Below, one piece after another: positions 2,651-32,921 of a DNA stretch of 49,166 nucleotides; position 1 is the stretch's first letter, and every line of letters begins with the position of its first letter. The notes under the pieces were generated by a model. That model searched no databases. It saw only the letters and a program-made list of their open reading frames with translations, and was not told where the DNA came from. Location: positions 20,408,970-20,458,135 of the forward strand of contig NC_068993.1 of NCBI RefSeq assembly GCF_001194135.2. Direction: 5' to 3'. Made by a program: the position numbers and the translations under genes. This DNA comes from Octopus bimaculoides (Eukaryota).

Positions 2651-2674
2651 TGACAAGACAAAGAAATTTCTTTC

Positions 2675-2754
2675 ATGCCTGTTTGGTCAGTGGTGGATCA
2701 GACAAGCAAGAATCCTTCAATTCGGTTTCAAATCTCATCTCGGAAAAAGGAAGT
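2675..2754 (+). CDS. ERCC1: Candidate first coding exon of ERCC1 (MPVWSVVDQTSKNPSIRFQISSRKKEV)
   Basis: ATG at 2675 is the first in-frame ATG after a TGA at 2651. A GTTAGT donor at 2755 has the phase (2) needed to join exon 3116-3185. The N-terminus would be short and there is no homology I can confirm. Confidence 0.22.
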
Positions 2755-3115
2755 GTTAGTTTTTACAGGCATATAAGCTTCCAATGCCCACTTTTTACCT
2801 TTACAGGGGCTTATATGCTTTAATATTTGACTATTTCCTAAAGTCAAATATGCTTTCTACATATTTATTCATACAATAACAGATTTGTGTCATGAAAGTA
2901 GCTAACACAGAACTATTCGATAAAACCCGCTGTGTCTCAGTCTAGTCTGTAACTTATCCTCACTGTTGTGCTGTGATAAATTATGTGAAGTGCAATGAGA
3001 AAAGGAAGTGTCAGATTGCCTTTATGCATAGTTTGTGAAATCTCTCAAATATTATTTATCCTTGTAGCAAATGTTTATTCACTAATGGTCTTTAATGGTC
3101 TGTTCTTTATTTTAG

Positions 3116-3185
3116 TGCCAACTCTGCTCAACCCACCGTGACCAGTAGAGCTTACAGTAATTCCATTATAGTTAACTCGAGACAG
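3116..3185 (+). CDS. ERCC1: ERCC1 exon ([23 protein letters not shown])
   Basis: tctttattttag acceptor, GTAAGA donor; [10 protein letters not shown] matches the ERCC1 motif preceding RGNP. Confidence 0.9.
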
Positions 3186-12815: not shown

Positions 12816-15800
12816 GTGCGTGTGTTTGTGTGTCTGTGTTTGTCCCCCCAACATCGCTTGACCACTGATGCTGGTGTGTTTACGTCCCCGTAACTTAGTG
12901 GTTTGGCAAAAGAGACCGATAGAATAAGTCCTGGGGTCGGTTTGCTTGGCTAAAGGCGGTGCTCCAGCATGGCCGCTGTCAAATGACTGACACAAGTAAA
13001 AGAGTATTTGCTTTTGAATGGTTAATAAATCTTCATCATGCTGCAGTCGTTTTAGTTTCAACACAGTCTTAGTTCAAATGAGTATACATCCAAAAATGAT
13101 ATTTTTGAAATTGCCAAATGTATATTCCATCTCATTAGTAAGGGTTTAAATGTGTGTTTTATTATGATTTAATTTATTAATGGTCTAATGTACATATAAA
13201 TGTATTGTTTTACTATATATTACAACCATGGTCCCTTTGCTTATAATCTATATATGGTCTTATTGTCTTTATTACAGCTGACAGAATGTTTAACTTCTGT
13301 GAAACAAATCAACAAGACTGACTGTGCCAATATCATCTCCAAATTTATGGTGAATATGTTTTCCTAATTATCAATGTTCCAGAATTTTAAATAAATGTGG
13401 CTAAATTACCTCTAATGTTGCTAGCTTTCTTAATTCTGCATGTAAAACTTCTTTGGGATTAGCTTAAAGATGAGAAGTATGGAATAGGAGAAAATAATAT
13501 TTGCAGGTGTGTCCTAGTCATGCCAGTGAGTAATAGACAAAAATGAGGAGTAAAGAGGATAAGATAGCTCATAAGAGTTATGTATTTTACATGGAACTCT
13601 GACAACTCATTGGATAGAATACAATTGCAGAGCATTTGGTTTCTGTATTATTGTTTGGTCTTCTTCAATCAAACATCATCATCATCATTGTTTAATGTCC
13701 GCTTTCCATGCTAGCATGGGTTGGACGATTTGACTGAGGACTGGTGGACCAGGTGGCTACACCAGGCTCCAATCTGATTTGGCAGAGTTTTTACAGCTTG
13801 ATGCCCTTCCTAACGCTAACCACTCCGAAAATCAATCTAAATCCAAGACTACATTATCCAATATGCTGTTTTTTTTAAAAAATCAGTAGGATGTGATGTG
13901 AGGAAGATTTGGTTCGCTATTTCTAGTACTGCAGGTAACCATTTAGGGGTTGCTTTGTTGGCTTGCATACTCCAGTATTCTTGTATTGCTGCTGAGGCTA
14001 CACAACAACAACTCTTTTCTGACTCCTCTAACAGACATACAGTTTATCAGTAACATCAAGCTTGCACATTTTCTAACTAGTTCATCACCATCATCATTTA
14101 ACATCCATTTTCCATGTTGTCATGGGTCAGATAGTTTAACAGTAGCTGGCCAGCTGAAGAGCTGCCCGGGTTCTATATCTGTTTTGGCATGGTTTCTACA
14201 GCCAGATGCCCTTCCTGACACCAACCACTTTACAGAGTGTACTAGGTGCTTTTATATAGCATCGGCACAGGTGTGTTTACATGGCACCAGCACCCATGAG
14301 CCCACAAGATTAGGGATGCAAGGCCAACCATGCTTTTTACTTAGCTTGACATGTCTTTTCAAGCACAGTAAACCACCAGGAGACTCAGTCCCTTGTCGTC
14401 CTCTCTGTGAGTCCCAACATCTGTAGATTCTTTCCCACTACTTTGTCCTACGTCTTCCTGGTTCTACCTTTTCCATATGTTCCTTCTACAATTAGAGACT
14501 GGCACCTCTTGATGCAACTGTCTTCATTCATATGCATTACATGGCCATACCAGAGCAGTCTTCTCTCTTGCATACTACATCTGGTGTCTCGTATATCCAG
14601 TTTTTCTCTCAAATCACTTACACTCTATTGCATATGCACACTAGCATTACCCATCCAGCAGAGCATACTGGCTTCATTTCTTTCAAGCCTTTGCATATCC
14701 TCAGTAGTCTCAGTCCATGTCTCACTGCCATGTAACATAGCTATTTGTACACCAGCAACATACAACTTGCCTTTCACTTTGAGGAAGAAACCTTTTGTTA
14801 CTAACAGAGGAAATAGTTCTCTAAACTTCACCCAGCCTATTCTTATTCTAGCAGTTGTGCTTTCAGAACAACTTCCCCCACTACTAACTTGGTCACCTGA
14901 ATAATAGAAACTATCTACTACTTCTAAGGATATCCCCCTGACATTCGAAGGAGTTTATTTTTTTTGTACATTCCTATTGTTTAATGTACCTGCACATCTG
15001 CCACTGGAAGACTAACACTTTCTGTGTTAGTCTTCCAGTGATACTGCTGCTGCACTTCCTATGTGCCCATAGCTTGCACTGGGTACATCTTATGGAGTAT
15101 CTCCCAGCTCCTTTTCTGCATATCAAGCAGGGCCATCTCCGTTAAAGGGATCTGTGATTTGTTTGTTTTCCTACTTATAAATACTTTAGTTTTTGCTGAA
15201 TTAATTCTAAGGCCCTATGATTCCAGTTTGTGCTTCCATATGTAATATATCTTCTCTAGTTCTGGTAGTGATTTAGCAATAATCTGAAATTTCTTCTCTA
15301 ATTTTGGTACTGATTCAGCAATAAAGTTATAAATATTATTTAAAGTGTTGATAAAACAAAAATAACTAACTATTTGTATTAAAAAAAGAAAAAAGCTAGT
15401 AAATAATTATGTGATGAAAAATGAAAGAACCTTCACTCTAAAAGTATTTATCTTTTTATTAGGCACAATACCAAACTTTTCTATGTGAGGTAGTATAGTA
15501 AATTGAATCAACTTTCAGGCAATATTATTTGTGTCTATTTTATTGCTCTTCCCACATTAAACAGGAGATTTGATTTGAGCAGAATTTGAAGTGAGAATGC
15601 TGAGGTACAAAATTAATTGTTTTAGTTTTCTCAGTTGATTGAAGGACAACATATTTGGAAAGAAGACTTTTAATTACCCCTATGATCATTCTGTATACTT
15701 TCAGTCATTAGAGGCCGTCATTCAGAGTAATGAAAAAGATTTTACATTTTGCCCTGGTTTGGGACCACGGAAGGTAAGTAGAAGTTTGCTCTCCCTCATA

Positions 15801-17635
15801 TCATTGTGGGTGTGTGGGTGATTGAAGACAGCTTTGATGCCCAACACTGGCACAGTCTTTTGCTTAGTGTCTTGGAGCGCTTGTTGTCAATAATAGAAGC
15901 TAAGAAAGATCCTTTTTTGTTGTTGTTGTGACCCTTCCCCACTGCCTAGAACATGAAATGTAGCTGGTCATGATACTAATTTATAGTATAGTACGTAGAC
16001 TACTTGTCAGAGATAAGTGCCTTGACTATAGTGTTGTGCCAACAGCTGATAGTCTGACATCATCATCATCATCGTTTAACGTCCGCCTTCCATGCTAGCA
16101 TGGGTTGGACGATTTGACTGAGGACTGGTGAACCAGATGGCTACACCAGGCTCCAATCTGATTTAGCAGAGTTTCTACAGATGGATGCCCTTCCTAACGC
16201 CAATCACTCTGAGAGTGTAGTGGATTCCGAAGACATATATATGGTTAACCTGACTGTGCAGGAAATGTGACACACACACTTCTAAAATCCTGATTTTTAT
16301 TTCAGTGTTTGGTGGAGGTTGAAAATATTATCTGTCATACTTCATGTTCTTTGAGCTACATATGGGATGTGGAAACATTTTCATGTAATTAAATAATTAT
16401 TTGCATGTAATTAAAGATTTAACCAATTTGTAGGAAATAAATGATGACTTAAATTACATAAGTTTCTTGTTCTTTTCTACTGATAGTGTCTAACAAAGAT
16501 TCCTTACTTTTGGAACTATCTTTGATTTCTTTCAGGCTGAGCAACTGTACAATGTTTTCCATGAGCCATTTTTAAAAAGAAGAAAACTACCATCAAACAA
16601 TGATGAAGGTATACTCGTTTTTCCCTCTCAGAAGGTCTACTGACCAAAGCTTTCTGTAAGTGTGTTTTTGTAACCATGACAAGAACTCCAACTCTGCTTG
16701 CTCTAATTTTCCTGACTTATGAAACAGATATTTATTTACACAGCATGAATGTATGGTTAGAAAGGTTGCTCAGCAGTCATGAGCTCCCTGGTTTGATTTC
16801 ACAACTTGGTATATTGAGCTAGTGTCATTTACCATTGCCTTGAATCAACCAATGTGCTGTGGGTGAAATCTGGATGATGGAAATTGCAGAAGCATGTTTG
16901 GTGCTTGTACCATTTAATACAAAGGCCCAGTCTTCAGCCTTGTTATGCAATGTGTCATGCTGGTTCTACCTGAGGATTATATTAGGGGGATACACGTTAG
17001 TTTAATACTCAACAATCTCCATATTAATTCAGTGAACAGCTTATCATCATCATCATCATTTAGTATTCATTCTCCATGGGTAGGACAATTTGACTGGAAC
17101 TGGTAAAACAGAGAGCTGCACCAAACTCCAGTCTGCTTTGGCTTGGTTTTTACAGTTGGATGCCCTTCCTAACGCCAACCACTCCGCAGAGTACTGGGTA
17201 CTGAATACTCATCACCAAACTGATGACAGTTCCTTTATGTTTTAATTACTAGTAAGAAAGAAATTCTCCTGTTATAGTAACTGCTATAAGGAAAACTATG
17301 CCACCTGTGCTAGCATGTAGAAGTGTATGCAAAAATATAAATTGACAAAACCAGAGAAAGTTCCAGTAAGTGAGTCTTTGTAAGGTGGTTGCATAATATA
17401 AATTATGTACCTCTGCAGCAGTTATTATTTTATTTACAGGTTCCATTACATATATTTTAAACTAATATATTGTATAGTACTTCAGTATTTATGTGTCATT
17501 TTCTAAATGCAAATACCTTTTGTTTTAAACATTTCACTAGTCCATGTATTGAAATAATTTTAATAAAATCCACCTATTCTGTGTCTGACTGGTACCCTTT
17601 CTTTTACAGTTGTTGAAACTAGCCCAAAGAAGTAA
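3116..17635 (+). CDS. ERCC1: DNA excision repair protein ERCC1, spliced gene (9 coding exons seen; N-terminal exon(s) uncertain)
   Basis: Manually joined GT-AG exons 3116-3185, 6111-6214, 8378-8477, 10190-10266, 12223-12322, 13278-13349, 15705-15773, 16536-16608 and 17610-17635 stay in frame. They give ...[60 protein letters not shown]...[57 protein letters not shown].../[15 protein letters not shown].../...[22 protein letters not shown]...SPKK*. This is the ERCC1 central domain plus tandem HhH domain. Confidence 0.96.
3590..3875 (-). repeat. RTE LINE 3'-end repeat copy
   Basis: Same family sequence, reverse orientation. Confidence 0.85.
4710..5065 (+). repeat. RTE LINE 3'-end repeat copy
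   Basis: Same family sequence ending ggacgttaaacgacgatgatgatg. Confidence 0.85.
5571..6023. repeat. Fold-back (palindromic) element with a hammerhead-like core on each arm
   Basis: 5571-5780 is the reverse complement of 5796-6023, apart from microsatellite-length differences. Cores CTGATGA...GAAAC (minus, 5657-5625) and CTGAAGA (plus, 5937-5943). Confidence 0.85.
6111..6214 (+). CDS. ERCC1: ERCC1 exon ([34 protein letters not shown])
   Basis: tttttttcag acceptor, GTAAAG donor; hallmark ERCC1 motif. Confidence 0.96.
7935..8335 (-). repeat. tRNA-derived SINE, full length
   Basis: Reverse complement of the 12625-13005 family, including the ctagcatggccgcag tail. Confidence 0.85.
8378..8477 (+). 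CDS. ERCC1: ERCC1 exon ([33 protein letters not shown])
   Basis: ttttcctcag acceptor, GTAAGG donor; SLRYH and LVQVDV motifs. Confidence 0.96.
8950..9590 (-). repeat. RTE LINE 3'-end copy with about five internal ~63-nt tandem units
   Basis: Repeated gtgcttttta-c-tgcc-cc-gcac...ccagtcagg...ctggcat units at ~9105-9420. Confidence 0.85.
9830..10020 (-). repeat. Third SINE family fragment (cctttcatcctttcggggtcgataaa core)
   Basis: The same core appears in the opposite orientation at ~10535-10750. It resembles the Meta-domain SINE core, from memory and unverified. Confidence 0.65.
10190..10266 (+). CDS. ERCC1: ERCC1 exon ([25 protein letters not shown])
   Basis: tcatttcag acceptor, GTAAGT donor; KMCILA.CTLILA motif. 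Confidence 0.95.
10535..10750 (+). repeat. Third SINE family copy
   Basis: gggtggtgag...ctttgcctttcatcctttcggggttgataaattaagtacc. Confidence 0.65.
10800..11075. mobile_element. Non-autonomous DNA transposon (MITE), copy 1
   Basis: Shares sequence with 11770-12095, whose end reads aaaggcttaa (TTAA/CCC-like terminus, piggyBac-type). Confidence 0.55.
11415..11757 (+). repeat. RTE LINE 3'-end repeat copy
   Basis: Same family sequence with GAT tail. Confidence 0.85.
11770..12095. mobile_element. MITE copy 2, interrupted by an RTE 3'-end fragment
   Basis: Aligns by eye with 10800-11075 once 11810-11921 is removed. Confidence 0.55.
11810..11921 (-). repeat. Short RTE 3'-end copy inserted in a MITE
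   Basis: (CAT)n-cgtttaacgtccgctttccatgctagcatggg...ggctccaatct interrupts the MITE sequence. Confidence 0.8.
12223..12322 (+). CDS. ERCC1: ERCC1 exon ([33 protein letters not shown])
   Basis: ctttctctag acceptor, GTAGGT donor; [11 protein letters not shown] motif. Confidence 0.96.
12625..13005 (+). repeat. tRNA-derived SINE, full length
   Basis: gtggctgcgtggtaag (A box-like) and ggttccgggttcagtccc (B box-like), an internal TA/TG microsatellite and a 3' tail ccagcatggccgctgtcaaatgactga. Confidence 0.85.
13278..13349 (+). CDS. ERCC1: ERCC1 exon, first HhH ([24 protein letters not shown])
   Basis: tttattacag acceptor, GTGAAT donor; 72 nt, the same length as the known 72-nt exon VIII of human ERCC1. 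Confidence 0.93.
13675..13830 (-). repeat. RTE LINE 3'-end repeat copy
   Basis: Same family sequence. Confidence 0.85.
14120..15240 (-). mobile_element. 5'-truncated RTE-clade LINE (RT C-terminus + 3' UTR + (GAT)n tail) in ERCC1 intron
   Basis: [20 protein letters not shown]...MLHGSETW...LERNEASML peptide; continues into the abundant 3'-end repeat ending in a GAT microsatellite. Confidence 0.85.
15705..15773 (+). CDS. ERCC1: ERCC1 exon, second HhH ([23 protein letters not shown])
   Basis: tactttcag acceptor, GTAAGT donor; CPGLGP.K hairpin motif. Confidence 0.95.
16060..16225 (-). repeat. RTE LINE 3'-end repeat copy
   Basis: Same family sequence. Confidence 0.85.
16536..16608 (+). CDS. ERCC1: ERCC1 exon ([24 protein letters not shown])
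   Basis: ttctttcag acceptor, GTATAC donor; HEPFLK terminal motif. Confidence 0.92.
17040..17200 (-). repeat. RTE LINE 3'-end repeat copy (diverged)
   Basis: (CAT)n...ggatgcccttcctaacgccaaccactcc. Confidence 0.75.
17610..17635 (+). CDS. ERCC1: Probable ERCC1 terminal coding exon (VVETSPKK*)
   Basis: cctttcttttacag acceptor with matching phase 1; TAA at 17633-17635; no homology support because the tail is not conserved. Confidence 0.6.
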
Positions 17636-18399: not shown

Positions 18400-20400
18400 G
18401 ACTAAATAGAGTGTATCATAGCGTTACATGTGAGAATGACAATGGCTCTTGAATCCTGCCAGCAGCTTACAAAACTTGATGCAGGTTCAACGTTCATACA
18501 AATTCTTTTGACTTCTTGGTTGTTCCGGATCATTCTAATGATTTTCTCTGTGCATCCTCATGTGCCTAGGTAAACCCGAGTGATTTATACGTGTTTTCTG
18601 GCACACAGTGCATGTGAAGTTGGCCCCAACCAGAAAGTTGTAGTTTGTAATAGATCTTTTTCGTGGCTTCTCTGATGGGTCACCAGGCCTGTGTGAGACG
18701 TACATATGCAGCCATAGACCTCACAGACTTGATGAGGAACTGTAGGGTCAACGAAATTGTCTTTTCATGCTGATCTTCTGCATGACCGCTCATTTTTATT
18801 TCACTGGAATGTGCTCATTCTGTCATAGTCCAGATTTTTTTGTCATGTGATATGTCTTCTCGCTCCTGTTATGAAATCATACAGATTCCAAGCAGTTCTT
18901 TTAAGTTGTCCTTAAATCACTTTCTCGACTTACGCTGCAGTCAAATACTTTGCAACAGTGTGCCAAACAACATCTACTTTGGAATTTGGCTTTCATCAAA
19001 ACACACAACATAATCAGCCCAGTGCATATAGTGATGATGGATGTGAGCTTCAATACTCACTGCATTTGCATATGTCAGCATCCTAATGCACTTATGCAAA
19101 CTGGAAACAGTATATGCCTTGACATATGCTAAGGTAAATATATACACACACAGACATGTGTTTATGTACATAGATATATAAATACACACTTGTACATATA
19201 TGAGGACCAAGTATGCCTTTCAAATTGTCATACAATACTCTCAAGTTGTGCAAGTTAGCAGCCAGTTCCAATTCTTGGGTTTTTCTTTGCTCACTGAAGA
19301 TTTTCTATTTCATGCAATTTTTTTGAGCAATTTTCTTAGAGGATGCATATAAGGATCTGTGTGATAGTGAGTTTTTGTTTGAGATCCATACGTTGTATTT
19401 TTCATGCATAGTTTTTAGATGTTTTGTTTGAGAATCATTCACACTGAACCAATTTTGATGCTTGTGATTGATTAATCTTAGAATTTCTTCAGCAGATGAT
19501 TTAATTCTGTTATTAAGATTACATCACAAAGCTTCAGGATCATTGCTTTTCTCTATATTCTCAAGTTTTGAATTTAGATACATTCCAAAATTTTGTATCA
19601 TTTCAGGATTTTTTAATGAAGGCACATTTATTCTAGAAATCTTAATTTCCTCTTTGTATATGGTTTAACAAATACCTGATTGCAAGCCATTCTGTAATCC
19701 AAGTAACTCTTGGGAATTTTATGAGCTCTTGTTGATCTGACATCACAGAAATTTTTGCTCTTAGCTATGCCAGTCAAGCATGTGCCAGTTATCTGATTGT
19801 GGAGACTTACAGGCATTTTTATATTTAATGACTGGCTGAAATACTGTCTGTGATTATAAGACCAAATTATTCACAAAAAGACAACAGTTGTAAACCACTT
19901 GCATTCATCTTTCCTGTTCCATGTTTTCCTACTACTTTTGCCCATACAGTGTATTTGTTACCTGTTCTGGCATTAAAATGGCCCATTAATATGACTTTGT
20001 CATGATACAGAATTTTACTTATAACTCTTTGTAATTTAATGTAGAAAATGTTATGTTCTTGCTGAGGCTCTGTAGGTGTATATGCACTGATAATGTGCAT
20101 AAACGATGAATTACTTATGGGTATACAAAAGGTCATGTGATGCTCATCAACAGCTTGGGGAATGGATGGCAGCTTATGAAGTAAAGTGGATTTAATGGCA
20201 AATCCAACTCCATGAATTCTTGACTGATCTGCTGGCTTTCCACTCTCAAAATATGCATAGCTACTTCCAACTTCTAATTCATCAGAATTTGCAAACCTGA
20301 TTTCACTTAGAACAGCAATATCAATATTATATGAACCAATTACCTTTGCAGTTAATGCTGTTTTTTTGTTCCAGACTCTAATTTGGATTTTAATGGTCTG
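18400..20400 (-). mobile_element. Decayed RTE/BovB-like LINE (endonuclease and C-terminal remnants)
   Basis: 20136-19867 IISAYTPT...DKVILMGHFNARTG...VGKHGTGKMNASGLQLLSFC is an RTE endonuclease. A C-terminal CEVYGCICTSHTGLVTH-like motif lies near 18680-18730. Confidence 0.75.
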
Positions 20401-20639: not shown

Positions 20640-20998
20640 ATAGTCCCTCAGTTGGCACTCTGTTGCTTACAACGTTGAGGGTTCCAGTTGATCCGATCAA
20701 CGGAACAGCCTGCTCGTGAAATTAACGTGCAAGTGGCTGAGCACTCCACAGACACGTGTACCCTTAACGCAGTTCCTGGGGATATTCAGTGTGACACAGT
20801 GTGACAAGGCTGACCCTTTGAATTACAGGCACAACAGAAACAGGAAGTAAGAGTGAGAGAAAGTTGTGGTGAAAGTGTACAGCAGGGTTCGCCACCATCC
20901 CCTGCTGGAGCCTCGTGGAGCTTTAGGTGTTTTTGCTCAATAAACACTCACAACGCCCAGTCTGGGAATTGAAACCGCGATCCTATGACCACGAGTCC
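20640..20998 (-). repeat. Second tRNA-derived SINE family
   Basis: The reverse strand begins with a tRNA-like head (gactcgtggtcataggatcgcggtttcaattccc), followed by a conserved-looking core and tail; the 5' end runs into the gap. Confidence 0.7.
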
Positions 20999-21591
20999 NN
21001 NNNNNNNNNNNNNNNNNNNNNNNNNNNNNNNNNNNNNNNNNNNNNNNNNNNNNNNNNNNNNNNNNNNNNNNNNNNNNNNNNNNNNNNNNNNNNNNNNNNN
21101 NNNNNNNNNNNNNNNNNNNNNNNNNNNNNNNNNNNNNNNNNNNNNNNNNNNNNNNNNNNNNNNNNNNNNNNNNNNNNNNNNNNNNNNNNNNNNNNNNNNN
21201 NNNNNNNNNNNNNNNNNNNNNNNNNNNNNNNNNNNNNNNNNNNNNNNNNNNNNNNNNNNNNNNNNNNNNNNNNNNNNNNNNNNNNNNNNNNNNNNNNNNN
21301 NNNNNNNNNNNNNNNNNNNNNNNNNNNNNNNNNNNNNNNNNNNNNNNNNNNNNNNNNNNNNNNNNNNNNNNNNNNNNNNNNNNNNNNNNNNNNNNNNNNN
21401 NNNNNNNNNNNNNNNNNNNNNNNNNNNNNNNNNNNNNNNNNNNNNNNNNNNNNNNNNNNNNNNNNNNNNNNNNNNNNNNNNNNNNNNNNNNNNNNNNNNN
21501 NNNNNNNNNNNNNNNNNNNNNNNNNNNNNNNNNNNNNNNNNNNNNNNNNNNNNNNNNNNNNNNNNNNNNNNNNNNNNNNNNNNNNNNNNNN

Positions 21592-23238
21592 CAATCTTTA
21601 TTAAATGTTACATCGAAAAGCGAAAATTGAAAATTTTTTTGATTATAATTGTTTGTTTGCATGCACATTACAATGAGGAATTTCTTGGTGTCATTGATGG
21701 TGAATCCGGGAACAAACATTTTCTTTTTTTTTTTTGGTGTAACTTCGTTACCGCTGTCGAGTACATCTGTGTCTGAGTCTGTTTGGTTTTTGTTTTCCAT
21801 CATGTCCATTACTTTTAGTATTTCTGTTTCTTCATCTGATGATACAGTGTAGTTGATTTGTGGTTCACGAACATATTTGTCGAATAGTATTTCCCAGATG
21901 GCTGAGTTTAGTTTTGATTTAGATTTTATTAAAAAGTAAGCTGGATTAGGAAATTTGTATTTAATTGTTCGTTGTTTAAATGCTTCTTTTTCATCTGCAG
22001 GTGCTAATGTGTCAAATGAGTAGTTACTTGTTATTATTATTGGTGTTCTTTTTATTGTAACACTAGGTTTGAATTTGACAGCTACTGCAGTGTCTGCACC
22101 TTCGGCAAGCTTCTTAAATGTTTGTAAAGTTTCTAAAGTCATGTTTGGTTCTTCAAATAAACAGAGTTCGGTTTGGTACATGTCTTGAAAAGGAAAACTG
22201 CTTGTGCCTTGAATAGTTTCTGAATATCTGAACATGGCTGAAATACTTTTGCGATATAACTTTTTCCGGAACTTGGTACCCCTTCTAAAACGAAAGTGTT
22301 AATTTTTGGTAGTTCTTTGGTTAGTATATTCCATATGCTGTTTACAAAATCAGATATCTCAATGTGCTGTATTTTTAGTAAATTTTCAAAAATTCTTAGA
22401 CTTGTTGCAACTGTATGGTATTCATTGGTATGAAATTTTGACCATTTCATATTGTGATTTTTTTTTCAAAACCTGTTGCTAAAGTTTCCATTTTTGAAGC
22501 TTCTGCTACTTTTTTTGCTATACTGTCAAACAGAGGATGAGCAAGTGCTCCTAGGAAGTTTTCATTGTTACTTCGTTAACACCATTCTTGTTTCATTTCT
22601 TTGAAATTAGCGTATTCTTTTAAACCGTATAAGTATTTGATGTAATTAAAAAGTTTCATTGATCTTCCGTTGGAATTGATGAAAGTCGGTTGTTGGAAAG
22701 AGGTAGAAGGTTGTTGTATAGTCAATTGATTGTTTGTATTGTAGTATTCTTCATTGCACCAAATGTTTAGTTCTTGAATTGAAGGATTTAATGTTTTAGT
22801 TAAGAATATTTTTGGTGGTTTGCAGAAGTAGTTAGTTAAAGCTGCTGGAAATTTTACTCGTTGAGTGTTTGGTATCTTGTGTTTGTAACCAGTTGCTTTC
22901 CAGTATTCTTGAGTTATTTTTTGCCAAGTACTGTCGTTAGCTGGACTTCTTTCTGTTTTACATTTCCATAGAATGTGGAAATGGTTTATAGTGTTCCAAT
23001 ATTTGTCTCTATTCACCATGTCTTCTGCACGATGGTAAATTGCTATAGCTTGTCTATTGGTTATGAATCGTAAAAGTCTTTTGGCATTACGTACGTCAGC
23101 GTCTTGTTGATTAATATCGTTTTCATTAGTATGTATTTCTGTTATGTCTTCAGTCGGTAGTTCTAAATCAGAATGCCAATGAAATTGTTCTGATGACAAC
23201 CATGGATATATAGCTGTATATAAATGTTCTTGGTTTTG
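21592..23238 (-). pseudogene. NS1: Parvovirus-type NS1/Rep (HUH endonuclease + SF3 helicase), about 550 codons, with 1 stop and 2 frameshifts
   Basis: Motifs seen: HUH NHFHILW (~22965-22986); motif III TNYFCKP (~22815-22836); Walker A VLEGVPSSGKS (~22262-22290); Walker B LCLFEEP (~22147-22167); KKLAEG...VKFK...RTPIIITSN motif C (~22025-22045); acidic tail plus PKKKKK. Lesions: in-frame TAA at 22576-22578 and 1-nt deletions at A-runs 22458-22466 and 22247-22250. Confidence 0.93.
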
Positions 23239-23261
23239 CTGTAAAAGATAAAATTATAATA

Positions 23262-23452
23262 TTAACGCATGGCAGGAAAAGATGAAGCTGAAGATGTATT
23301 AGAATATGTTCTAAGACCTTGTGGCCACTGACATAAGTTCATTTTATGTTCTGGATTAAGAGGACATGTTTTTGTAGCTGCTGGTATTCTTGGTAAATAA
23401 CCAATGAATTGTGGTGAACCACTTGGTTTTTCAAAGTCTACTTCGCTGAAAT
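23262..23452 (-). pseudogene. Parvovirus-like capsid fragment, C-terminal part after the LTR insertion (YFSEVDFEKPSG...FPAMR*)
   Basis: Removing the LTR and one TSD copy restores the frame ...KVNFLITIDYFSEVDFEKPSGSPQFIGYLPRIP...PAMR, with TAA at 23264-23262. Confidence 0.75.
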
Positions 23453-23456
23453 AGTC

Positions 23457-23880
23457 TATAGGAAAGTGGGTTATTGTAGCTCAGCAGGCTGCGTGTTTGA
23501 ATCAAGTCAGAGGGTCACCAGTATAGAGAAGTGGGTTATACATCATTAGATGTACACCTGACTTTCCTGTATAAAATTAAGAATTAACGGAACGCTGAAC
23601 TCCAGACTATCAACATAACAACATTTATTCAAGGTGGAATATATACATCTTTAGCTCTTGTTTGTTGAGACGTCTTTTGTGTGTGTGAGCATGGTTGTTG
23701 GGATGTTGGTATGTAGATGTAAACGAGCTGTCTAGCGTAAGTTCGAAAGATGGAGAGAGACAGCTAAACACGTCCTTGCTCAATCGCTGGCCAGCAACAA
23801 AGAGACAGAATGAAGCGGGAAAGCTTGGTTATTGAATTCCACGCATGCGTGAGACTACGCATGCGCATGGCGTTACTACA
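23457..23880 (-). mobile_element. Deleted Ty3/Gypsy LTR element (LTR + tRNA-Trp-like PBS + second LTR end) inserted in the viral capsid ORF
   Basis: On the minus strand, LTR 23880-23522 reads TGTAG...CTATA with a TATA-like GTATATAT and then AATAAA. It is followed by PBS TGGTGACCC and a repeat of the LTR end ATAACCCACTT..CTATA. 4-bp TSD agtc at 23453-23456 and 23881-23884. Confidence 0.8.
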
Positions 23881-24313
23881 AGTCTATAGTTATAAGGAAA
23901 TTTACTTTTGCCGCTTGGTTTTTTACGTCCAATAGTGGAATTGGATCTAATGCTGCTATTGGAGGTGGATTAGAAGGATTTATCGGCATTTGTGTTAAGC
24001 AGCTTCTACTTGGTATTTTAACGTCATTTAACATATCGTTCCATGTAGTTTTTCCTTGCACTTTTTCTGGTGTCCAATTGTCATCTGCATTTTGAAATGC
24101 ATTTACTTCACAAGCTATTTCTGAATCATTACCAATTTCTCCGTATGTTATATGTCCTGCTAGAGCATCGAAATCTGCTGCATTAAACCAACTAGGTGTA
24201 CGATTTACCCAAGTGTATTCCCAAGTGTCGTCTGTGCGTAGAAGTTTCCAACGTCCTGTATTGTATATGCTCATTAGTTCTTCAGCTGGCATTTCCTGTG
24301 CTGTATTAGTAAA
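23881..24313 (-). pseudogene. Parvovirus-like capsid (VP) fragment, part before the LTR insertion
   Basis: KLLRTDDTWEYTW resembles the conserved VP motif (CPV LLRTGDEF, AAV MLRTGNNF). NPPPIAALDPIPLL...KVNFLITID resembles AAV HPPPQILIKNTPVP...FITQYS. Motif recognition only; no alignment was run. Confidence 0.72.
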
Positions 24314-24324
24314 TTTTTTTTTAA

Positions 24325-24760
24325 GTAAATCCATACCTGAGGTTAGACAAATCTACCTGAGGTTCTTTCTCAGAGGAGTATTCTTTCTAGTGCATACATT
24401 TTACAAAGTATTCCATTTTTACAATGAGCTTCTTTACATATACTCTCTTTGGTGGTATCAGTATATTCTTCATTGAATTCGGTACAGGATAATTCTCCAT
24501 GTTGGCATTCAAGTTTGTCAGTAAAACTCCCTCTAAATAGGATGTCTACATATATATAGACATCGTATTTAGGTAAAAAAATATGTGCTCTATATGTTTA
24601 CAGCTATCATTGATACTAAAGTGCTCTTTACACATATGGATCTATTTGATAACCATATACTCTGCAGAGAGCTTTCTGGGGATACTGTTTGATTCCTTGA
24701 ATCCCTATTGCCAATTCTGTATTTATTAATTGATCAAAGAGGTATTCCATTGTCTCACTT
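24325..24760 (-). mobile_element. Penelope-like element 5' fragment
   Basis: The minus frame SMKNILIPPKRVYVKKLIVKMEYFVKCMH*...RYGF matches the N-terminus of the Penelope-like ORF at 30749 (SMKDIPIPPKKIYIEQLIHK). Confidence 0.65.
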
Positions 24761-24764
24761 GAAA

Positions 24765-27700
24765 AACTTTCTTGAGCCGATCGATACTAACAGTATTCTG
24801 TTTACCATTTACATCGACAACAAAATATTTCTCCCGTTTTTGCAGTACTTTGTAAGGGCCAGAATACGGTGGGCGGATTTGTGCTGGTATTCTGTCATTT
24901 CTAACAAACACGTGTGTCCATTGATTAATGTCCGTGGGGACATATGTATCAGTTTCCTGCTGGCGAGGTGGGTTTGGTGACAGCTGTGACATATGTGCAC
25001 GTAGGCGATGCACATATGTTGTGGGATCTGGGATATCCTGTGGAATTACTGGAACAATCATTTGTCCAGGCAGGGTTAATGTGGTGCCGTAAACGAGTTC
25101 TACCGGTGAGTATCCGATCTCATCCTTGACGGATGTACGGATACCAAGCAGGATTAACGGAAGGAAGCCTATCCAATTGTTCACGTCAGGATATGCCCGT
25201 ATGGCTGATTTCAGTTGCCTGTGGAATCTCTCCACCGTGCTGTTTGCCGCCGGATGGTATGCTGTAGTGCGACAGTGTTTGGAACCGATGAGTCGAGTAA
25301 GCTCGCTGAAAAGGTGACAGTCAGGTTGTCTTCCTCTGTCTGTCGTGATGATAGCAGGGATACCAAAACACGATACCCAGTGTGATATCAGCGCTTTAGC
25401 CACGGTTTCTGCTGTGGTATCAGAGAGAGGGAAAGCTTCAGGCCATCGTGAAAAGCGGTCGATACAAGTGAGTAGGTGTGTATAGTTGTGAGACGGAGAT
25501 AGAGGTCCAATGATGTCTATGTGGATGTGTTGGAAACGACTGTCTGGTGCTGTAAAATTACCAAGGGGTGACTTGACATGTCTGTGTACTTTTGCCTTTT
25601 GACATGCAACGCAACTTTTAACCCAGTCGCGGATGTCTTTATTGATGTTCGTCCACACAAAGCAAGTTGCTATCATCCTCTGTGTGGGACGAACACCAGG
25701 ATGTGACAAACTGTGTAAGGTGGTGAAAATTTTCAATCTGTGTTGTTTGGGGATGTTTGGGCGCTCATGTCTTGTGGAAACATCACACCATATTTGACCG
25801 GTTGAAGAAGATAGTGGGCAAAGTTGGAATTTGAGGGATGATGAATTTCATAACTTATTAGGTTCTTCGTCATCCTCTTGGTCCGCTGCGATCTGCTGTA
25901 ACTCAATCGGTTCTGAAGTATGCAGTGCATTAAGATGGGCGCGGGACAAGGTGTCTGTGGCCGTGTTATCGGAACCTTTAACGTACCGAATGTTGGTTAA
26001 ATATTGAGAGATAAAATCAAGGTGACGGATTTCTCTCGGAAAACGTCGGTCATTCTTCGTTTTAAAAGCATAAACCAGTAGTTTGTGATCCGTGTAGATG
26101 CTGAAGGCAGTCCCTTCAAGCATATGGCGAAAATGTTTAACAGAAAGGTATGTGGTGAGTATGTAAAAGTTTGATAGTTGCAATAGAGACATTAGTCTCT
26201 TTCTATCACTTTTCAACATAATTATATATTAAGGAACAGTAGAACAATTCAACAACATAATAAAAATAAGTTTTATTTTTGATGATCCTTGGTTATATAA
26301 ATCCTGTGTCACTCAGCTTAGCAGCTGCTGATTAAGTTGTAATTTGGTATTGGAAGATTAAGAGCTTCCTTGATGAATGCCAGTGGAGCAAATAGCTATC
26401 ATATCGATAGCATTGTGGTGAAGAGTGCTTCGTTGAGGAGCGAGGTGTTGTCACGTCGAAGGTTTCTTGTTCAACTATCTTAGAAAGTGAAACAAACTCT
26501 TTAAGTACTAATTTTACTACGCATGCACACTCGAGGGGCTTCCGGAAAGGCAAGTCCCTTGCGCAAGTGCAGAATAGTACTTCTTCAATGGCGGCTATAA
26601 GTAGTTCTCGTCCGAAAGTGCTGTATTTAACTTCTGCGGGCTGTAGTTGCTTGGAGAAGAAGGATAGTGGTTGCCAAATTCCATCCACAAACTGTTGCAA
26701 GATGCCGCCGATTCCAGTCTGAGAGGTGTCAACCAGTAGTGTGAGTGGAGTATCAGGTTTGGGATGAACTAGCATCGTAGCTGTAGCTAGCATATCCTTT
26801 AGCTTGTTGAAGGAGGCTAGTTGTGTGTCACATAATGTAATTTCTTGCTTCTTTTTTGTTGGTCTGTTGCACCGGACGTTGGTAAGCAGTTGAGCTACTT
26901 TTGTGCAATGTGGAAGAAAGCGATGGTAGAAATTCACGCATCTCAAAAACTCACGGAGTTTCCGAAGAGACGTTGGGATAGGAAAATTCACTATGGCATC
27001 CACTTTGTCAGGCAGAGGACGGATTCCGTCTTTGTCAACGATGTGCCCGAGGAAAGGCAGAGATAAGACACCGAAAATGCATTTACTTGTGTTAATGGCT
27101 ATGCCATAAACAGTCAGTCGCTGGAAAAGTTGTTGGAGGTGATCTTCGTGTTTGGCCTCAGAGGCGCTTGCTACTAGCATATCATCGATATATGCGTAGA
27201 CGAAGGGTAAACCTCTTGTGACAGTGTCGATGAAACGCTGAAATGTTGGCGCTGCATTACATAATCCAAATGGTATTTGCAAGAATTGATATGCACCAAA
27301 AGGAGTGGCAATTGTGGTTTTGGGGACATTGGCTGGTTCAACGGGTATTTGATTGTAGGCCTGAATTAAATCTATTTTGGAGAAAATCTGTGCTCCATTC
27401 AGCGAAGCAGAAAAATCCTGCAAGTATGGTATGGGATAGGGGTCAGCCACTGTAGCAATGTTGAGAGCTCTGTAATCTCTGCATGGATGCCAACCATTTG
27501 TTTCCTTAGGAACTAAATGAAGGGGGCTGGACCAACTGCTGTTTGACGGTTGAATGATCCCTAGATCTAGCATGTGCTGGAATTCCTGCTTCGCTCTGCG
27601 CAAGCAATCTGGGGGCAGTCTCCTTGGTCGCGATGCTACTGGTGGGCTTGTGGTCTCGATCCGATGTGTGATGCCATGTTTAATCTCGGTGTTTCTAAAT

Positions 27701-28402
27701 ACCGGCCTCGTGATATTTGGAAACTGGTGAAGAACATCCAAGTAACGTCCAGTGTGGGGAGATAAAAGGATTGGTCCGACTGTGGGTATTTGTGCAGTTA
27801 TGCCTCGCACAGTCAGACTGGTGGTGCTATCTACGAGTCTGCGTCGTTTAATATCGACCAAAAGACCAAAGTGGTGTAGAAAGTTGGCTCTTATTATAGG
27901 TGTCGGTAAATTGGCAGCAACGAAAATCCACTGAAATACTCATCGAAGACCTAAATTCAGAGTCAAAGGCTGTTTGTCAAAAGTTTAAATGGGAGACTGG
28001 TTAACTGCTTGGAGAAAAGTTGGCGTCTGTTTCCTGTGGCCTGCGGTTAGTGAAACGGGGAGGATGCTAATCTCGGCTTCGGTATCCACGAGAAAATGGG
28101 TACCTGAGGTACGGTCGTGAATATACAACAGACGACTTTTGTTGGCTCGACCAAGGACGTTCGTTATCCTTATGTCCTGGCTTGGTTGTTTCCCGAACTA
28201 TGAGGGATGTTGATCTTGTATGAGTAGGGTGGCCTGCATGAATGTGCGTCCTTTCCGAATTTCGCGTGGTAGAAGCACAATCTGGAACTGCGAGTGGCGC
28301 TAGGGCTTCTGGAGCGGTGTCTATTAAAATGCCGGTATGGTCTGTGGTCAAGAGAGGAACGGTCACGCACAGTTAACTCCTGCAACTGTGCTGCAAGTGT
28401 CT
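24765..28402 (-). mobile_element. Ty3/Gypsy LTR retrotransposon internal region (gag end-PR-RT-RH-IN), CsRn1-like, frameshifted
   Basis: Gag knuckle CFYHAKFGKDAHSC; protease FLVDTEAEIS; RT PF.LCNA..TFQR and YIDD; RNase H DTSQTGIGGILQQ and YTDHK; integrase HPG...[22 protein letters not shown] and GPY. The 5' part lies in the gap and the 3' end is truncated at DRLK. Confidence 0.95.
26162..26599 (-). mobile_element. Solo LTR inserted in the Gypsy RNase H coding region
   Basis: Termini tgtaa...ctata, 4-bp TSD agta at 26158-26161 and 26600-26603. Removal restores GRELL-TTYLSVKHF. TTTATATAA followed by AATAAA on the minus strand. Confidence 0.85.
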
Positions 28403-29089
28403 NNNNNNNNNNNNNNNNNNNNNNNNNNNNNNNNNNNNNNNNNNNNNNNNNNNNNNNNNNNNNNNNNNNNNNNNNNNNNNNNNNNNNNNNNNNNNNNNNN
28501 NNNNNNNNNNNNNNNNNNNNNNNNNNNNNNNNNNNNNNNNNNNNNNNNNNNNNNNNNNNNNNNNNNNNNNNNNNNNNNNNNNNNNNNNNNNNNNNNNNNN
28601 NNNNNNNNNNNNNNNNNNNNNNNNNNNNNNNNNNNNNNNNNNNNNNNNNNNNNNNNNNNNNNNNNNNNNNNNNNNNNNNNNNNNNNNNNNNNNNNNNNNN
28701 NNNNNNNNNNNNNNNNNNNNNNNNNNNNNNNNNNNNNNNNNNNNNNNNNNNNNNNNNNNNNNNNNNNNNNNNNNNNNNNNNNNNNNNNNNNNNNNNNNNN
28801 NNNNNNNNNNNNNNNNNNNNNNNNNNNNNNNNNNNNNNNNNNNNNNNNNNNNNNNNNNNNNNNNNNNNNNNNNNNNNNNNNNNNNNNNNNNNNNNNNNNN
28901 NNNNNNNNNNNNNNNNNNNNNNNNNNNNNNNNNNNNNNNNNNNNNNNNNNNNNNNNNNNNNNNNNNNNNNNNNNNNNNNNNNNNNNNNNNNNNNNNNNNN
29001 NNNNNNNNNNNNNNNNNNNNNNTGATGCATGATAAATACAATTTTAATAAAAATAATACAAAAAAATTTATACATTTAAAAAAGAGAGA

Positions 29090-31150
29090 TTTAACACCAG
29101 AGTTTTATATCCACGTCTTCATTCAATGTAAACATTTCTGTGTTTAACTATATTTAACCATTAAAATAAGCTAAATATATTAGTCGTCTCACACGTCATC
29201 AGGAATGATTTTCATTAGAACAAAAAACCAAAAGAAAACATAATGAATCGATCAAACAAATCAATTTTTAAAAAACTATACCATTTTCAGTCATCTGTTT
29301 TAATTTTATTGTTATCATTTTCAATATAGAAAACCTTATCTCTATAACCAGCCTTATTTAATGCTGCATTATAGAAATGAGCTTCATTATTAAAAACCCT
29401 ATTATTAGCAGATAATCTAGAGAGTCTTAATGAAATATTTTTAACTAAATTATCAATAATAGCCCTAGGATGGTTACTTGATTTATTTATATACTTTAGG
29501 TTCGTTAAAGGATTATTGTATGGTCTATATGTCTCATTTTTAATATCTAATGTTACATCTAAAAAATTTGCCACTGAAATATCATCTTCATAAACTATAC
29601 CCATCCCCATTCTGCTGAAAAATCTGGCCAGTCTACCCTTAATCCTCTGCAGTTCCTGGTTAGAGCAATTCCTAATATATAAAAGGCAGTCATCTCTATA
29701 TAGACCCCCCTAATCCTAGGGAATTGATCATTTAGTTTGTAGAATGAACCCACCATATCAGCTATTTGAGCTGAGTCTGAGCTTCCCATGGGGACATCGA
29801 AAGCATCTGGTGTATCTTTTCTTCTCCATAGTTTATCGTTAAAGCTAATAAAAGATTTTCTAGCAGCTGTTATTACTTTAAATTCTCTAGTGAGACCAGC
29901 CTTTTTATGGAAAAACCACATTGCCTTATTTAATATTATCGGATTAATCGATCTATAAAAATTTGCTATATCAAATTGAATAAATTTAGTGTCTTCTTTG
30001 TGCTCAATAGAGTTAAGCCAACTTATTACTTGGTCTGTACTAGACCATAATTCTAACTTCAACTTAATTATTATTTTAGGTAAATACTTATTAATAATGT
30101 TTTTACTTAAATACTCCAATGTCTGATTTTGTTGGGCATATAAGTCTTAAAGATGGTTGTGTCCAAAAGTTCACTTTATGATCCTTAAGGATGAATCTCG
30201 GTTCTTTTGGTACCAATGGTTCCGTCCTATCTGTCAGGTTGTACTTCTCCATTATTTCTTTAGTTTCCATATTAGCTTTCTCAAGTATCTTATTATTTAC
30301 TATCTTGTAACTCTTCTCGATTTCTTTTTGCAGTAGATCCTTGTAGTTCTGCTTGGTCAATTTGTAGATGTTCCCTGTTTTGTCGGATTTCACTAAAAAA
30401 CTTTGTTAGTATTCCTTATTTCTTTAATAATTCCTTTTGTGTATTTCAGGTGTTGATTCATTCTCCGTGATCTATTAAATTTAATGTTCTTTACGACAGA
30501 CCAAATATCTTCTTCGAACTTATCTAATCTGTGGTTATACGGCGGATTTCTTCTAGACTTAAATAATCTTGTGTATTTCGATTCGTCTTTCGATATATCA
30601 TTGTGTTTTTCTTTTTTATCCCAAAAATGCGCCCTCCATCGAATTCTATTTATAAAAGAATGCGTTTTATGGATGAGCTGCTCAATATAGATCTTTTTTG
30701 GTGGGATAGGTATGTCCTTCATGGATATGTCTATGTTAAAAATTTCCATTGGTAAACGGTCATGTATCTGCGTCTACTAAAAGACGAGAAGTTATTATAA
30801 TTTTTCAAAGTAAACTCTGTAATTGTTATCAATATAGCATAAGATTTCACCTCAAAGAATATATATATATATATATATGTATATATATTTCAAGGTTTTT
30901 AACTTTTAAATTTGTATATTTAAAAGAGACAGAAACTTCAAACTCGATATATCCAAGATCGATTTATTCACCACTCTATGTCAACATTTCTGTGCCAAAC
31001 TTATCCAGTGACTGGTCCATTGGATTTCGACATTTGGCACTTCTTCAGGAATGGCTACCATCGGAACAAAACACGAAAAAACACATACATAACGATCATA
31101 TTAAATTATTAAATTATTAAAATCCCGTTACAGTTCAACATTTTTTCTGT
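29090..31150 (-). mobile_element. Penelope-like retroelement, decayed RT ORF between diverged terminal repeats
   Basis: ORF pieces 30749-29287 carry IPIPPKK..RIRWRA, KSDKTGNIY, QFDIANFY, FDVPMGS..AQIADMVG, GLYRDD (after a frameshift) and NFLDVTLD...YINKSSNHP. Related terminal segments lie at ~29090-29260 and ~30950-31150. Confidence 0.88.
30985..31053 (-). ncRNA. Hammerhead-ribozyme-like motif in the Penelope 5' terminal repeat
   Basis: CATTC-CTGAAGA-A...C-GAAA with stem III ATCCA/TGGAT followed by A. Stem I pairing next to the cleavage site is imperfect. Confidence 0.45.
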
Positions 31151-31499
31151 TATTATAGGGGAGGTAACTCCTTAATTTTCTATTTTTATTGCTCTCCTGT
31201 GAATTTCCACTAGATTAATTTATTTAATTTATTTGTTTATTTATTCATTTATTTATTAATTTATTTATCTATTAATTTAGTTATTAATTTTTAAATTCTT
31301 ATCTATTATCCCCTATATGTCTACTATATTCATTGCCCCTAGAGGGTTCATCTGTTTATTATTCCATTTTATATTATTATTGTTAGGTCTCTTTACTTTG
31401 CTAATAGAGATCTCAGTTCAGCCATCAAACCTCCTAGGAATCATTACAAGTCTCTTTACTAAAAAAAAATTATATATACTCAAATCTTCATTTTTTCTT

Positions 31500-32921
31500 T
31501 AAGGAGATATAATCTGGACGAGAGCAACAATGTGAGGTTGAATCTCAGCCAGCTGTTTTTTGGTTTGTTGATCCTCTTCAAGTGTACCAAGTTAATTACA
31601 GAACGTATTCACCTGGAAGTGATTATCAGTATGGTTTTGAGTTGGGTAGCCATTGCAAATAACACGGTTATCTCACATAGCAATTTTAATTGAAATGGGT
31701 CATGATTCTTCAAGTGTAATATTGCATTTCTGTCCCTCAGCTTCAGCATATCTGGTCACTTGTGTCCCCACAGCCAATGTGACGAGAGTCCTTTAACAAA
31801 TTGATCTAATGTATCTGTGTGAGAACTTGAATTTAAATAGCTGACGTCAGTACACATTGAAATTAGTAACTTTCTTCAGTTCTGTTACTGGATATCTCAC
31901 ATTATCCAAGTACTATCTTAGTTTTCATGGATCATCTTGTCTTTGTTGTATCTGATAACGAATATATCTTTTACCTTCCTTTTATGTTATATCTGATAAT
32001 GAGCTTGATTATGATTGTGCATACAGGTATTGGAACAGTGCAATAACAGGAATTGCAAAATATTTTGCAGGTTATTTTAAACTTGTTTTTTTTTTTTTTT
32101 TTTTTTTTTTTGAAGGGTTAATATGTCTATATTTGGGATCAGCCAAGAAGTTAGCCTTGTGATCCTTTAAAGTGAAATGGGCAGTCATAGGAGCTAAGCA
32201 TTCAACCTAGTCATCTATTTTAATTATTGATGCTAGTTCTTTTGCTTCAATATCAATATTATTGTATGTGCCAGGGTCAGTTTTTGATAGGTTTTAGTAA
32301 TATTGCTAGAGAGGAGCTGATTATTCAGGTTTTTCTGTACCTCATTAATGCTTTTGGTGTTGTGTGAGGGTACATGTAATTTGTCCAATGTATGGTACTG
32401 TTTCAAATCATTTATGAGTGTGTGTTGAAAATGGTCAGAAAATTTACTGAACTTTACTTTTTTAACTTGGTTCAGCAGGCCATTTTCAAAGGCCTCCAAT
32501 TTTTTGATTTTATAAGGGGCATTTTTTCAAGGCAAATCCATATTTGCAATTAGTTAAATCTGCCTGAGGTCCCTTCTCAAAGAAGTATGCTTTCTAGTGT
32601 ATATGTTATATTGTGTTCCATTTTTTTTCAATGAGTTTAAATAAGCATACGCTTTTTGGTGATATTGGTGTATTCTTCATAGAATATATAGAGCTGAGGA
32701 TAAACCAGCTCTATTACTGGATATCTCATGCTCTCCGAGTACTGTCCTGGACGGTTTTTGTGAATCATCTTGTCTTTGACATTGTCTGCTATGAGAAAAT
32801 TGAAATACTTTTTACCTTCCTCTTTTGTTATCTCTGATAATAAAGATTAATCAAGAATATGAGATCATGCATTCAGGTCTTTGAATATTCCAACAACAGG
32901 GATTGCAAAATATTTTGCAGG

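Follow-up and report, generated by a model that had tools for sequence, protein, structure and literature searches.

A decayed parvoviral element of Octopus bimaculoides points to a lineage of Parvoviridae with the capsid gene ahead of NS1

According to a 2024 review, all parvoviruses carry the non-structural (NS) genes on the left and the capsid (VP) genes on the right of the genome (PMC11357303, section 1.1.1). A stretch of 49,166 nt of the Octopus bimaculoides genome (NC_068993.1, positions 20,408,970-20,458,135; hereafter called the window, with coordinates given as positions within it) carries remains of both genes in the reverse order, with the end of a VP open reading frame (ORF) directly upstream of a frame homologous to the replication protein NS1, both on the minus strand. 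This raises the question of whether the capsid-first order arose by integration, concatemerisation or misassembly, or was already present in the virus. Comparison with relatives shows an order that does not appear to be due to any of these three processes, and which is very probably native to the virus. The window copy itself is a dead endogenous viral element, and is likely to derive from a lineage of Parvoviridae with a linear genome running from hairpin through promoter and leader, VP and NS1 to a second hairpin, in which NS1 would be expressed via a splice.

Direct reading of the minus strand showed that the VP frame closes with ATG CGT TAA, with the stop codon at 23264-23262, and that the NS1-homologous frame opens at 23238, reading QNQEHLYTAIYPW..., which agrees with the first-pass annotation of the window. 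The 23 nt spacer between the two (23261-23239, minus strand, tattataattttatcttttacag) contains neither an AATAAA sequence nor an ATG in the NS1 frame, and its final CAG is interpreted as the putative 3′ splice acceptor of an NS1 mRNA. No telomere-like palindrome was found at the junction, with an inverted-repeat scan of positions 23000-23500 detecting just four weak arms of 10-17 nt, and the earlier claim that palindrome and polyadenylation signal are both missing between VP and NS1 is hence upheld. The helicase motifs quoted in the same annotation could all be located in the window NS1, and its description of the locus as parvovirus-like holds for the element, but not for a whole genome, as this is a 5′-truncated remnant in which VP homology starts at 24322 rather than at 24313.

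The helicase part of the window NS1 matches the Pfam model Parvo_NS1 (PF01057) as it stands (E 1.3e-9, over the curated cut-off) and is also matched by PPV_E1_C, and it displays the Walker A (GVPSSGKS, 22282-22259), B (LFEEPN, 22160-22143), B′ (VAVKFK, 22085-22068) and C (IIITSN, 22040-22023) motifs of the superfamily 3 (SF3) helicase of Parvoviridae. No Pfam model matched the N-terminal part, for which the nuclease identity stands at the motif level, with the HUH and catalytic tyrosine motifs of the Parvoviridae NS1 nuclease both present and aligned with those of intact relatives (Table 1). The proteins nearest to the window NS1 are from O. bimaculoides (84% identity), Logan read sets and O. 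vulgaris (46%), and homologues in this search came only from octopus data, in keeping with the window being octopod DNA. The intact NS1 encoded by a related contig from ENA (L008, Table 1) has adeno-associated virus (AAV) Rep40 and Rep68 as its best matches among solved structures in the PDB (E 7e-9). The first-pass impression that the helicase most resembles NS1 of invertebrate densoviruses or hamaparvoviruses was not supported.

The pieces of VP left in the window gave no Pfam match, and a search with a window VP piece gave no PDB sequence match; the sole database match of the window VP ORF was the O. vulgaris protein P0001, with 75% identity. P0001 is part of an intact O. vulgaris ORF of 536 aa (P0008, named 'capsid' by NCBI), which carries a VP1-type phospholipase A2 (PLA2) domain at its N-terminus (Pfam PF08398, E 4.5e-13). 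A tblastn search of the window with the intact octopus VP returned two collinear blocks covering VP residues 327-536, with 74% and 78% identity (E 1e-63 and 7e-30). A relative of P0008 with 41% identity, P0009, is encoded on L008, and the PLA2 domain was detected in the intact VP homologues with E-values of 4.5e-13 and 2.4e-12. A profile made from P0008 and P0009 matched the AAV VP1 unique region (VP1u, E 2e-9), and within the body of the protein the solved major capsid protein of Penaeus monodon metallodensovirus (PmMDV, PDB 6wh3, E 1.5e-6); the match to a chapparvovirus VP (9nek, E 0.012) was weak, and that to the capsid of infectious hypodermal and haematopoietic necrosis virus (IHHNV) was below threshold. 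Since the intact homologue has a PLA2 domain and the profile matches both AAV VP1u and the PmMDV capsid, the upstream ORF is, judged by sequence similarity, a parvoviral VP1 and not an accessory NS gene of the NS2/NS3 type, which supports the capsid-like assignment made at first pass.

An exhaustive profile search for VP relatives with P0008 and P0009 gave 181 homologues, 12 of these at E ≤ 1e-30. When 30 VP clusters were looked up, a virus name was attached to one alone, a distant metagenome-assembled genome from a bird virome. Ten virus-sized contigs of 3.65-4.36 kb, from ENA, NCBI, Logan and JGI, have VP followed by NS1 on the same strand, with both frames open (Table 1). The downstream ORF matched Parvo_NS1 upon rescanning in five cases, and precomputed matches exist for L009, L010, L011, L017 and L018, while a PLA2 domain is present in the VPs of octopus and of L008, L014, L015 and L016. 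Outside near-identical pairs, the NS1 proteins of these VP-first genomes share 22-42% identity, and because this is so low, the group is likely to be old and diverse. No relatives were obtained from IMG/VR, whether scanned with P0009 or with the NS1 alignment, nor from a first JGI scan using that alignment. L009 and L010 also have an extra ORF of 159 aa between VP and the NS1 helicase region (L009:1869-2348, L010:1768-2247). This ORF overlaps the NS1 frame and was matched by no Pfam model; it possibly encodes an accessory protein of that lineage.

The same adjacency is repeated in L014, a eukaryote-sized contig in which VP and NS1 alternate. Three head-to-tail VP-NS1 units lie within L014:1-12000, with a period of 3.63-3.87 kb and approximately 70-93% mutual identity; all three VP ORFs are full-length, and NS1 is represented in turn by an ORF of 475 aa, by a copy broken into two ORFs and by an ORF of 539 aa. 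This contig may represent either an old array or repeated integration of different genomes at one site. The arrangement in which NS is promoter-proximal and VP distal was seen neither in the window, nor in a second octopod copy (L003/L004, see below), the ten contigs or the L014 array. The only relative found with this canonical order is L013, in which NS1 precedes a PLA2-bearing VP that is 22-28% identical to the others. Because L013 has NS1 before VP, homologous capsid genes occur in both orders, and this contig could help to date the rearrangement of the gene order.

The junction is also not restricted to a single octopus locus. Logan contigs L003 and L004, from two sequencing runs, begin in a host-type microsatellite and share 69% nucleotide identity with the window, unbroken over the 3′ end of VP, the spacer and NS1. 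The truncation of VP differs in position from that in the window, the spacer measures 33 nt, and this copy has also decayed, with one frameshift and four stop codons relative to the L008 NS1.

Table 1. Coordinates of the viral remnants and their neighbours in the window, and gene order in related contigs (window positions unless a length is given)
Feature	Source	Position or length	Strand	Description and evidence
VP-NS1 spacer	Window	23239..23261	-	Pyrimidine-rich tract with CAG at its end; sequence reading and inverted-repeat scan
VP remnant	Window	23262..24322	-	C-terminal ~210 of ~536 codons and TAA; tblastn with intact O. vulgaris VP
NS1 remnant	Window	21592..23238	-	First codon after putative acceptor to assembly gap; Parvo_NS1 and tblastn with L008 NS1
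HUH motif of NS1 nuclease domain	Window	22966..22983	-	HFHILW; aligns with HFHIIW of L008 NS1
NS1 active-site tyrosine motif	Window	22810..22833	-	NYFCKPPK; aligns with NYLVKPPR (L008) and NYFCKPPR (P0007)
SF3 helicase core	Window	22023..22282	-	Walker A to C; motif positions and Pfam Parvo_NS1 and PPV_E1_C matches
Assembly gap	Window	20999..21591	.	593 N; cuts 3′ end of the element, hiding the sequence after NS1
Degenerate long terminal repeat retrotransposon	Window	24353..32685	-	Neighbour; directly adjoins 5′ edge of VP remnant
L008	ENA	4017 nt		VP 464-2041, then NS1 open 2064-3953; Parvo_NS1 E 9e-16
L009	NCBI	4079 nt		VP then NS1
L010	NCBI	3974 nt		VP then NS1
L011	NCBI	3876 nt		VP then NS1
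L012	ENA	3805 nt		VP then NS1
L015	Logan	3650 nt		VP then NS1
L016-L018	Logan, three runs	4343-4359 nt		VP then NS1; eight contigs read with the same VP
L019	JGI	4071 nt		VP then NS1
L014	ENA, ERZ21939214 ctg11754l	1.14 Mb		Eukaryote-sized contig; array VP-NS1-VP-NS1-VP-NS1
L013	Logan, SRR5645212	4399 nt		NS1 (745 aa), 99 nt, then PLA2-bearing VP (615 aa)

The free contigs and the L014 array also allowed us to consider the extent and topology of the viral genome. L008 has a Y-shaped hairpin of 87 nt starting at base 1 (dG -22.4, z -7.2), upstream of a TATA-like element and VP, and L009 and L016 have near-perfect 3′-terminal hairpins after NS1 (z -12.6 and -11.8, respectively). In L014, a near-perfect hairpin of approximately 100 nt (dG -53, z -14.9) lies between the end of the first NS1 and the start of the next VP, and related palindromes flank the array at both of its ends and also separate the second unit from the third. 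No hairpin was found between VP and NS1 in L014 or in the free relatives, where strong hairpins occur only outside the VP-NS1 pair. The terminal direct repeat that is the signature of a circle was present in none of the ten contigs, and the two 23 nt ends of L015 are reverse complements of each other, reminiscent of an inverted terminal repeat (ITR). As the hairpins sit outside the VP-NS1 pair and direct terminal repeats are absent, the unit is likely to be a linear genome with the order hairpin, VP, NS1, hairpin.

How NS1 might be expressed from such a genome is suggested by the sequences on either side of VP. The VP stop codon of L008 is followed after 16 nt by the opening of the NS1 frame, whose first in-frame ATG lies 406 nt after the stop, past the HUH motif, with the first NS1-frame ATG of L009 similarly located 378 nt after the VP stop. 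A leader of 26 codons starting with ATG (L008:366-443) ends at the sequence GCG/GTAAGT (the slash marking the putative splice site), 20 nt ahead of the VP ATG, and the sequence after the VP stop reads ttttctttataattacag/GCT, with NS1-homologous coding beginning at that base. The donor in L014 is identical to that of L008 and is located 6 nt ahead of the VP ATG, and a short ATG leader with a GTRAGT donor 3-17 nt before the VP start was found in four lineages (L008, L014, L009 and L012). The phases of leader and acceptor are compatible in L008 (0+0), L009 (2+1), L012 (2+1) and units 2 and 3 of L014 (1+2), where chance would give compatibility in roughly one out of three cases per lineage. The acceptor CAG is located exactly five codons ahead of the conserved LYTxIYPW motif in the window, in L003/L004 and in L008, and L009, L011, L012 and L014 have equivalent acceptors behind their VP stop codons. 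Apart from one copy within the VP ORF, AATAAA sequences on the plus strand of L008 are found only at 4002-4015, after NS1.

We propose that a single promoter at the left end would give one pre-mRNA, with a short ATG-initiated leader exon ending at a consensus GTRAGT donor just before VP. Splicing from this donor to the pyrimidine tract and CAG acceptor after the VP stop would remove the entire capsid ORF and join the leader in frame to NS1, whereas VP would be translated from the unspliced RNA. The L008 RNAs would share one poly(A) site at the right end, as the sole plus-strand AATAAA outside the VP ORF is located there. The tight VP-NS1 junction would thus represent the 3′ end of an intron, which would explain why promoter-sized gap, poly(A) signal and palindrome are all absent from it. 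We regard expression of NS1 by such a leader-to-NS1 splice, removing VP, as reasonably probable.

Several observations weigh against one part or another of this reading, and are best considered together with the alternatives. The first-pass annotation had named three possible sources of the junction, these being a circular genome, a telomere-less concatemer and an undescribed VP-first lineage, and only the last of these is favoured by our data. If the genome were circular or obligately head-to-tail concatemeric, VP before NS1 would merely be one rotation of it, with assemblers cutting the contigs at the hairpin; the head-to-tail multimer in the 1.14-Mb contig L014 could have come from integration of a circle or rolling-circle product, and most of the free contigs have a strong hairpin at one end only. 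We consider this improbable in view of the missing terminal direct repeats, the strictly terminal hairpins of L008 (beginning at base 1), L009 and L016 (both in the final bases), the inverted, ITR-like ends of L015, and the presence of palindromes at every unit boundary of L014, as for a homotelomeric linear genome; moreover, a circular genome would leave both the adjacency of VP and NS1 and the proposed splice layout unchanged. An ordinary NS-first parvovirus that integrated head-to-tail or circularised, as is known for AAV, could have lost its telomeres and brought a VP stop next to NS1 by chance, and the window, where only the 3′ part of VP and NS1 are left, does look like the middle of a dimer, while the distant relative L013 has NS before VP. 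This is very unlikely given that the same adjacency recurs in ten single-unit contigs with open frames from four archives, with a promoter-like region, leader and hairpin ahead of VP and a hairpin behind NS1, and given that the acceptor falls at exactly the same codon in the window, L003 and L008, which a random breakpoint would not give. The junction also requires no telomere-less concatemer, since it is present in free contigs consisting of a single unit. Least probable of all, to the point of being negligible, is a misassembly or post-integration rearrangement specific to this locus: the scaffold does have four N gaps in the window, one of which directly follows NS1, and VP has been disrupted by a retrotransposon and an insertion, but L003/L004 show the same junction at 69% nucleotide identity in independent read sets, as do the intact relatives. 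The window and L003 may, on the other hand, both go back to one integration, as old paralogues, and not to two separate ones.

The most serious alternative touches only on the mechanism, and holds that the order is native, but that NS1 is expressed without the long splice, from its own start codon, using either a promoter inside the 3′ region of VP or re-initiation after the VP stop. In-frame ATG codons occur near the NS1 N-terminus in L011, L012, L014, L015 and L016, so that some lineages could produce NS1 with no need for the leader; in L003, an ATG in the NS1 frame adjoins the VP stop. Such a start is not available in L008 and L009, where no in-frame ATG appears until about 380-400 nt have passed and the nuclease domain has already begun, and the recurrence of a donor before VP and an acceptor after VP in four lineages, all of them phase-compatible, also speaks against it, making expression from an own start codon unlikely as the general explanation, although the two modes may coexist. 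The leader ATG would, on an unspliced RNA, form an upstream ORF ahead of VP, which leaves the translation of VP unexplained by the splicing model. With respect to the capsid, AlphaFold2 prediction for P0009 without an alignment reached a predicted local distance difference test (pLDDT) score of only 33, too low to be usable, and the assignment of a jelly-roll fold therefore rests on sequence-profile similarity. Finally, the main uncertainty for the novelty of the VP-first order is the genome organisation of PmMDV, which has the nearest solved capsid.

The capsid-first order differs from the layouts described for the family. Parvovirus taxonomists writing in 2026 listed monosense, ambisense and bipartite genomes, VP-first not being among them, and because classification rests on NS1, the order of the cassettes describes convention without serving to demarcate taxa formally (PMC13426907). 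Parvovirus-related sequences from molluscs that fall outside the known genera were described by Francois et al. in 2016, with octopus or cephalopods not being mentioned (PMC5013282), and a full-text search of the literature gave no description of a VP-first parvovirus order or of octopus parvoviral elements. With the AAV-type Parvovirinae, the VP-first group shares an NS1 with HUH nuclease and SF3 helicase, a VP1 with PLA2 domain, a genome of approximately 4 kb that probably has terminal hairpins, the use of one strand, and, in our model, splicing to the promoter-distal gene, which would be NS1; the difference is that the capsid ORF is promoter-proximal, and that it is NS1, not VP, which would require removal of the upstream cassette. 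Canonical parvoviruses make their VP mRNAs by splicing out NS sequence, and the model proposed here is the mirror image of this.

Among solved capsids, that of PmMDV (Metallovirinae) alone shows significant sequence similarity to the putative jelly-roll region of the VP, and PmMDV is also a virus of an aquatic invertebrate with a small genome (4.4 kb), described as having a 'unique genome organization', but it lacks the PLA2 domain found in the VPs of octopus, L008, L014, L015 and L016. The ambisense densoviruses (Densovirinae) are likewise invertebrate parvoviruses with a PLA2-bearing VP that depart from the same-strand NS-then-VP layout, although their VP is located on the opposite strand, whereas here it is upstream on the same strand. 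Concatemeric or circular-episome integrants of the AAV type also present a VP end followed by a rep/NS start on one strand, comparable to the head-to-tail units of L014. Junctions of AAV-type integrants keep ITR sequence between cap and rep, and an ITR remnant would be expected at the VP-NS junction of a concatemeric integrant of any canonical parvovirus, whereas here VP and NS1 are separated only by the 23 nt acceptor tract (up to approximately 130 nt in L008 and L014), with no palindrome in or around the 23 nt spacer and with the hairpins located at the NS1-to-VP junction. The circular Rep-encoding single-stranded DNA viruses have a circular genome, in contrast to the ten contigs without a direct terminal repeat, and the genes described here are a parvovirus-type NS1 and a capsid gene with PLA2 domain.

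The window copy has lost the first approximately 326 codons of VP, including the PLA2 domain, and what remains of VP is interrupted by one insertion of about 0.4 kb of non-viral DNA, with no in-frame stop codons in the homologous blocks; neither the window nor the O. vulgaris loci contained a further copy of this insertion. Using tblastn, the intact L008 NS1 aligned with the window in three blocks covering residues 6-504 of 629 with 42% identity, revealing two frameshifts and two in-frame stop codons. The window NS1 has neither a start codon nor a leader exon, and the last part of its C-terminal tail is lost in the 593-N gap. No additional pieces of VP or NS1 were detected in the 49-kb window, including the region beyond the retrotransposon, when all six frames were searched by tblastn and with profile hidden Markov models. 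Fragmentary and disrupted NS1 and VP genes flanked by host repeats are also characteristic of parvovirus-derived endogenous elements of other invertebrates, and the locus has a retrotransposon on one side, host repeats past the gap on the other, disrupted genes, and homologues annotated in both O. vulgaris and O. bimaculoides.

The long terminal repeat remnants of the adjoining retrotransposon (24353-24478 and 32560-32685) are 76% identical, and Pfam matches to integrase, RNase H and reverse transcriptase were obtained for ORFs within it at 24729-27861. An N gap (28403-29022) breaks up the element, in which further insertions are also probable at 29287-30749. On the far side of the gap that follows NS1, a short minus-strand ORF (19867-20136) resembles part of an endonuclease of the long interspersed nuclear element type, without a Pfam match at E ≤ 0.001, and the sequence next to the gap (20937-20998) looks like a tRNA-derived short interspersed nuclear element, although ARAGORN called no tRNA there; the tRNA scan of the window was negative as well. 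Both appear to be ordinary host repeats.

Other parvoviral sequences are present in octopods. An O. vulgaris locus (L001; OX597817.1, around 168.36 Mb) contains several intact VP ORFs of 536 aa with PLA2 domain (e.g. L001:11933-13543 and 14926-16536), two of the copies being one residue apart and located in tandem units of approximately 3 kb, next to further inverted partial copies. Each VP copy has TATA- and CCAAT-like sequences approximately 65-85 nt upstream, and the copies are embedded in a T-rich satellite of about 125 nt. NS1, leader and donor are absent from this array, which is hence not informative on the junction, and may represent a recently amplified or co-opted capsid gene. A more divergent lineage consisting of NS1 only, which is 46-58% identical to the window helicase, is formed by a second O. 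vulgaris locus (L002; OX597822.1, around 9.5 Mb) and by L005-L007. The NS1 of L002 is 5′-truncated without an upstream VP, and does not inform on gene order. Because L002 and L005-L007 form this second, NS1-only lineage, octopods hold more than one family of parvoviral insertions.

Taken more broadly, we lean slightly towards a deep, diverse and so far undescribed clade of Parvoviridae, in which the capsid gene would be nested within an intron of the replication gene, with members in marine, freshwater and other metagenomes, repeated entry into animal germlines including those of octopods, and amplification of an intact capsid gene in O. vulgaris. Gene order has been treated as a constant of parvoviruses, and early and late regulation, promoter maps and annotation pipelines have all been framed around replication genes coming first. 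If the capsid-first order is true, the textbook view of NS as invariably promoter-proximal would be overturned, the architecture would prove invertible, and this would raise the question of how early expression of NS1 is secured. Pipelines for the discovery of viruses and endogenous viral elements that expect NS before VP may mis-orient or split VP-first genomes. For cephalopod genomics, parvoviral endogenisation is now documented in octopods, and the intact, amplified capsid gene of O. vulgaris is a candidate for a co-opted gene.

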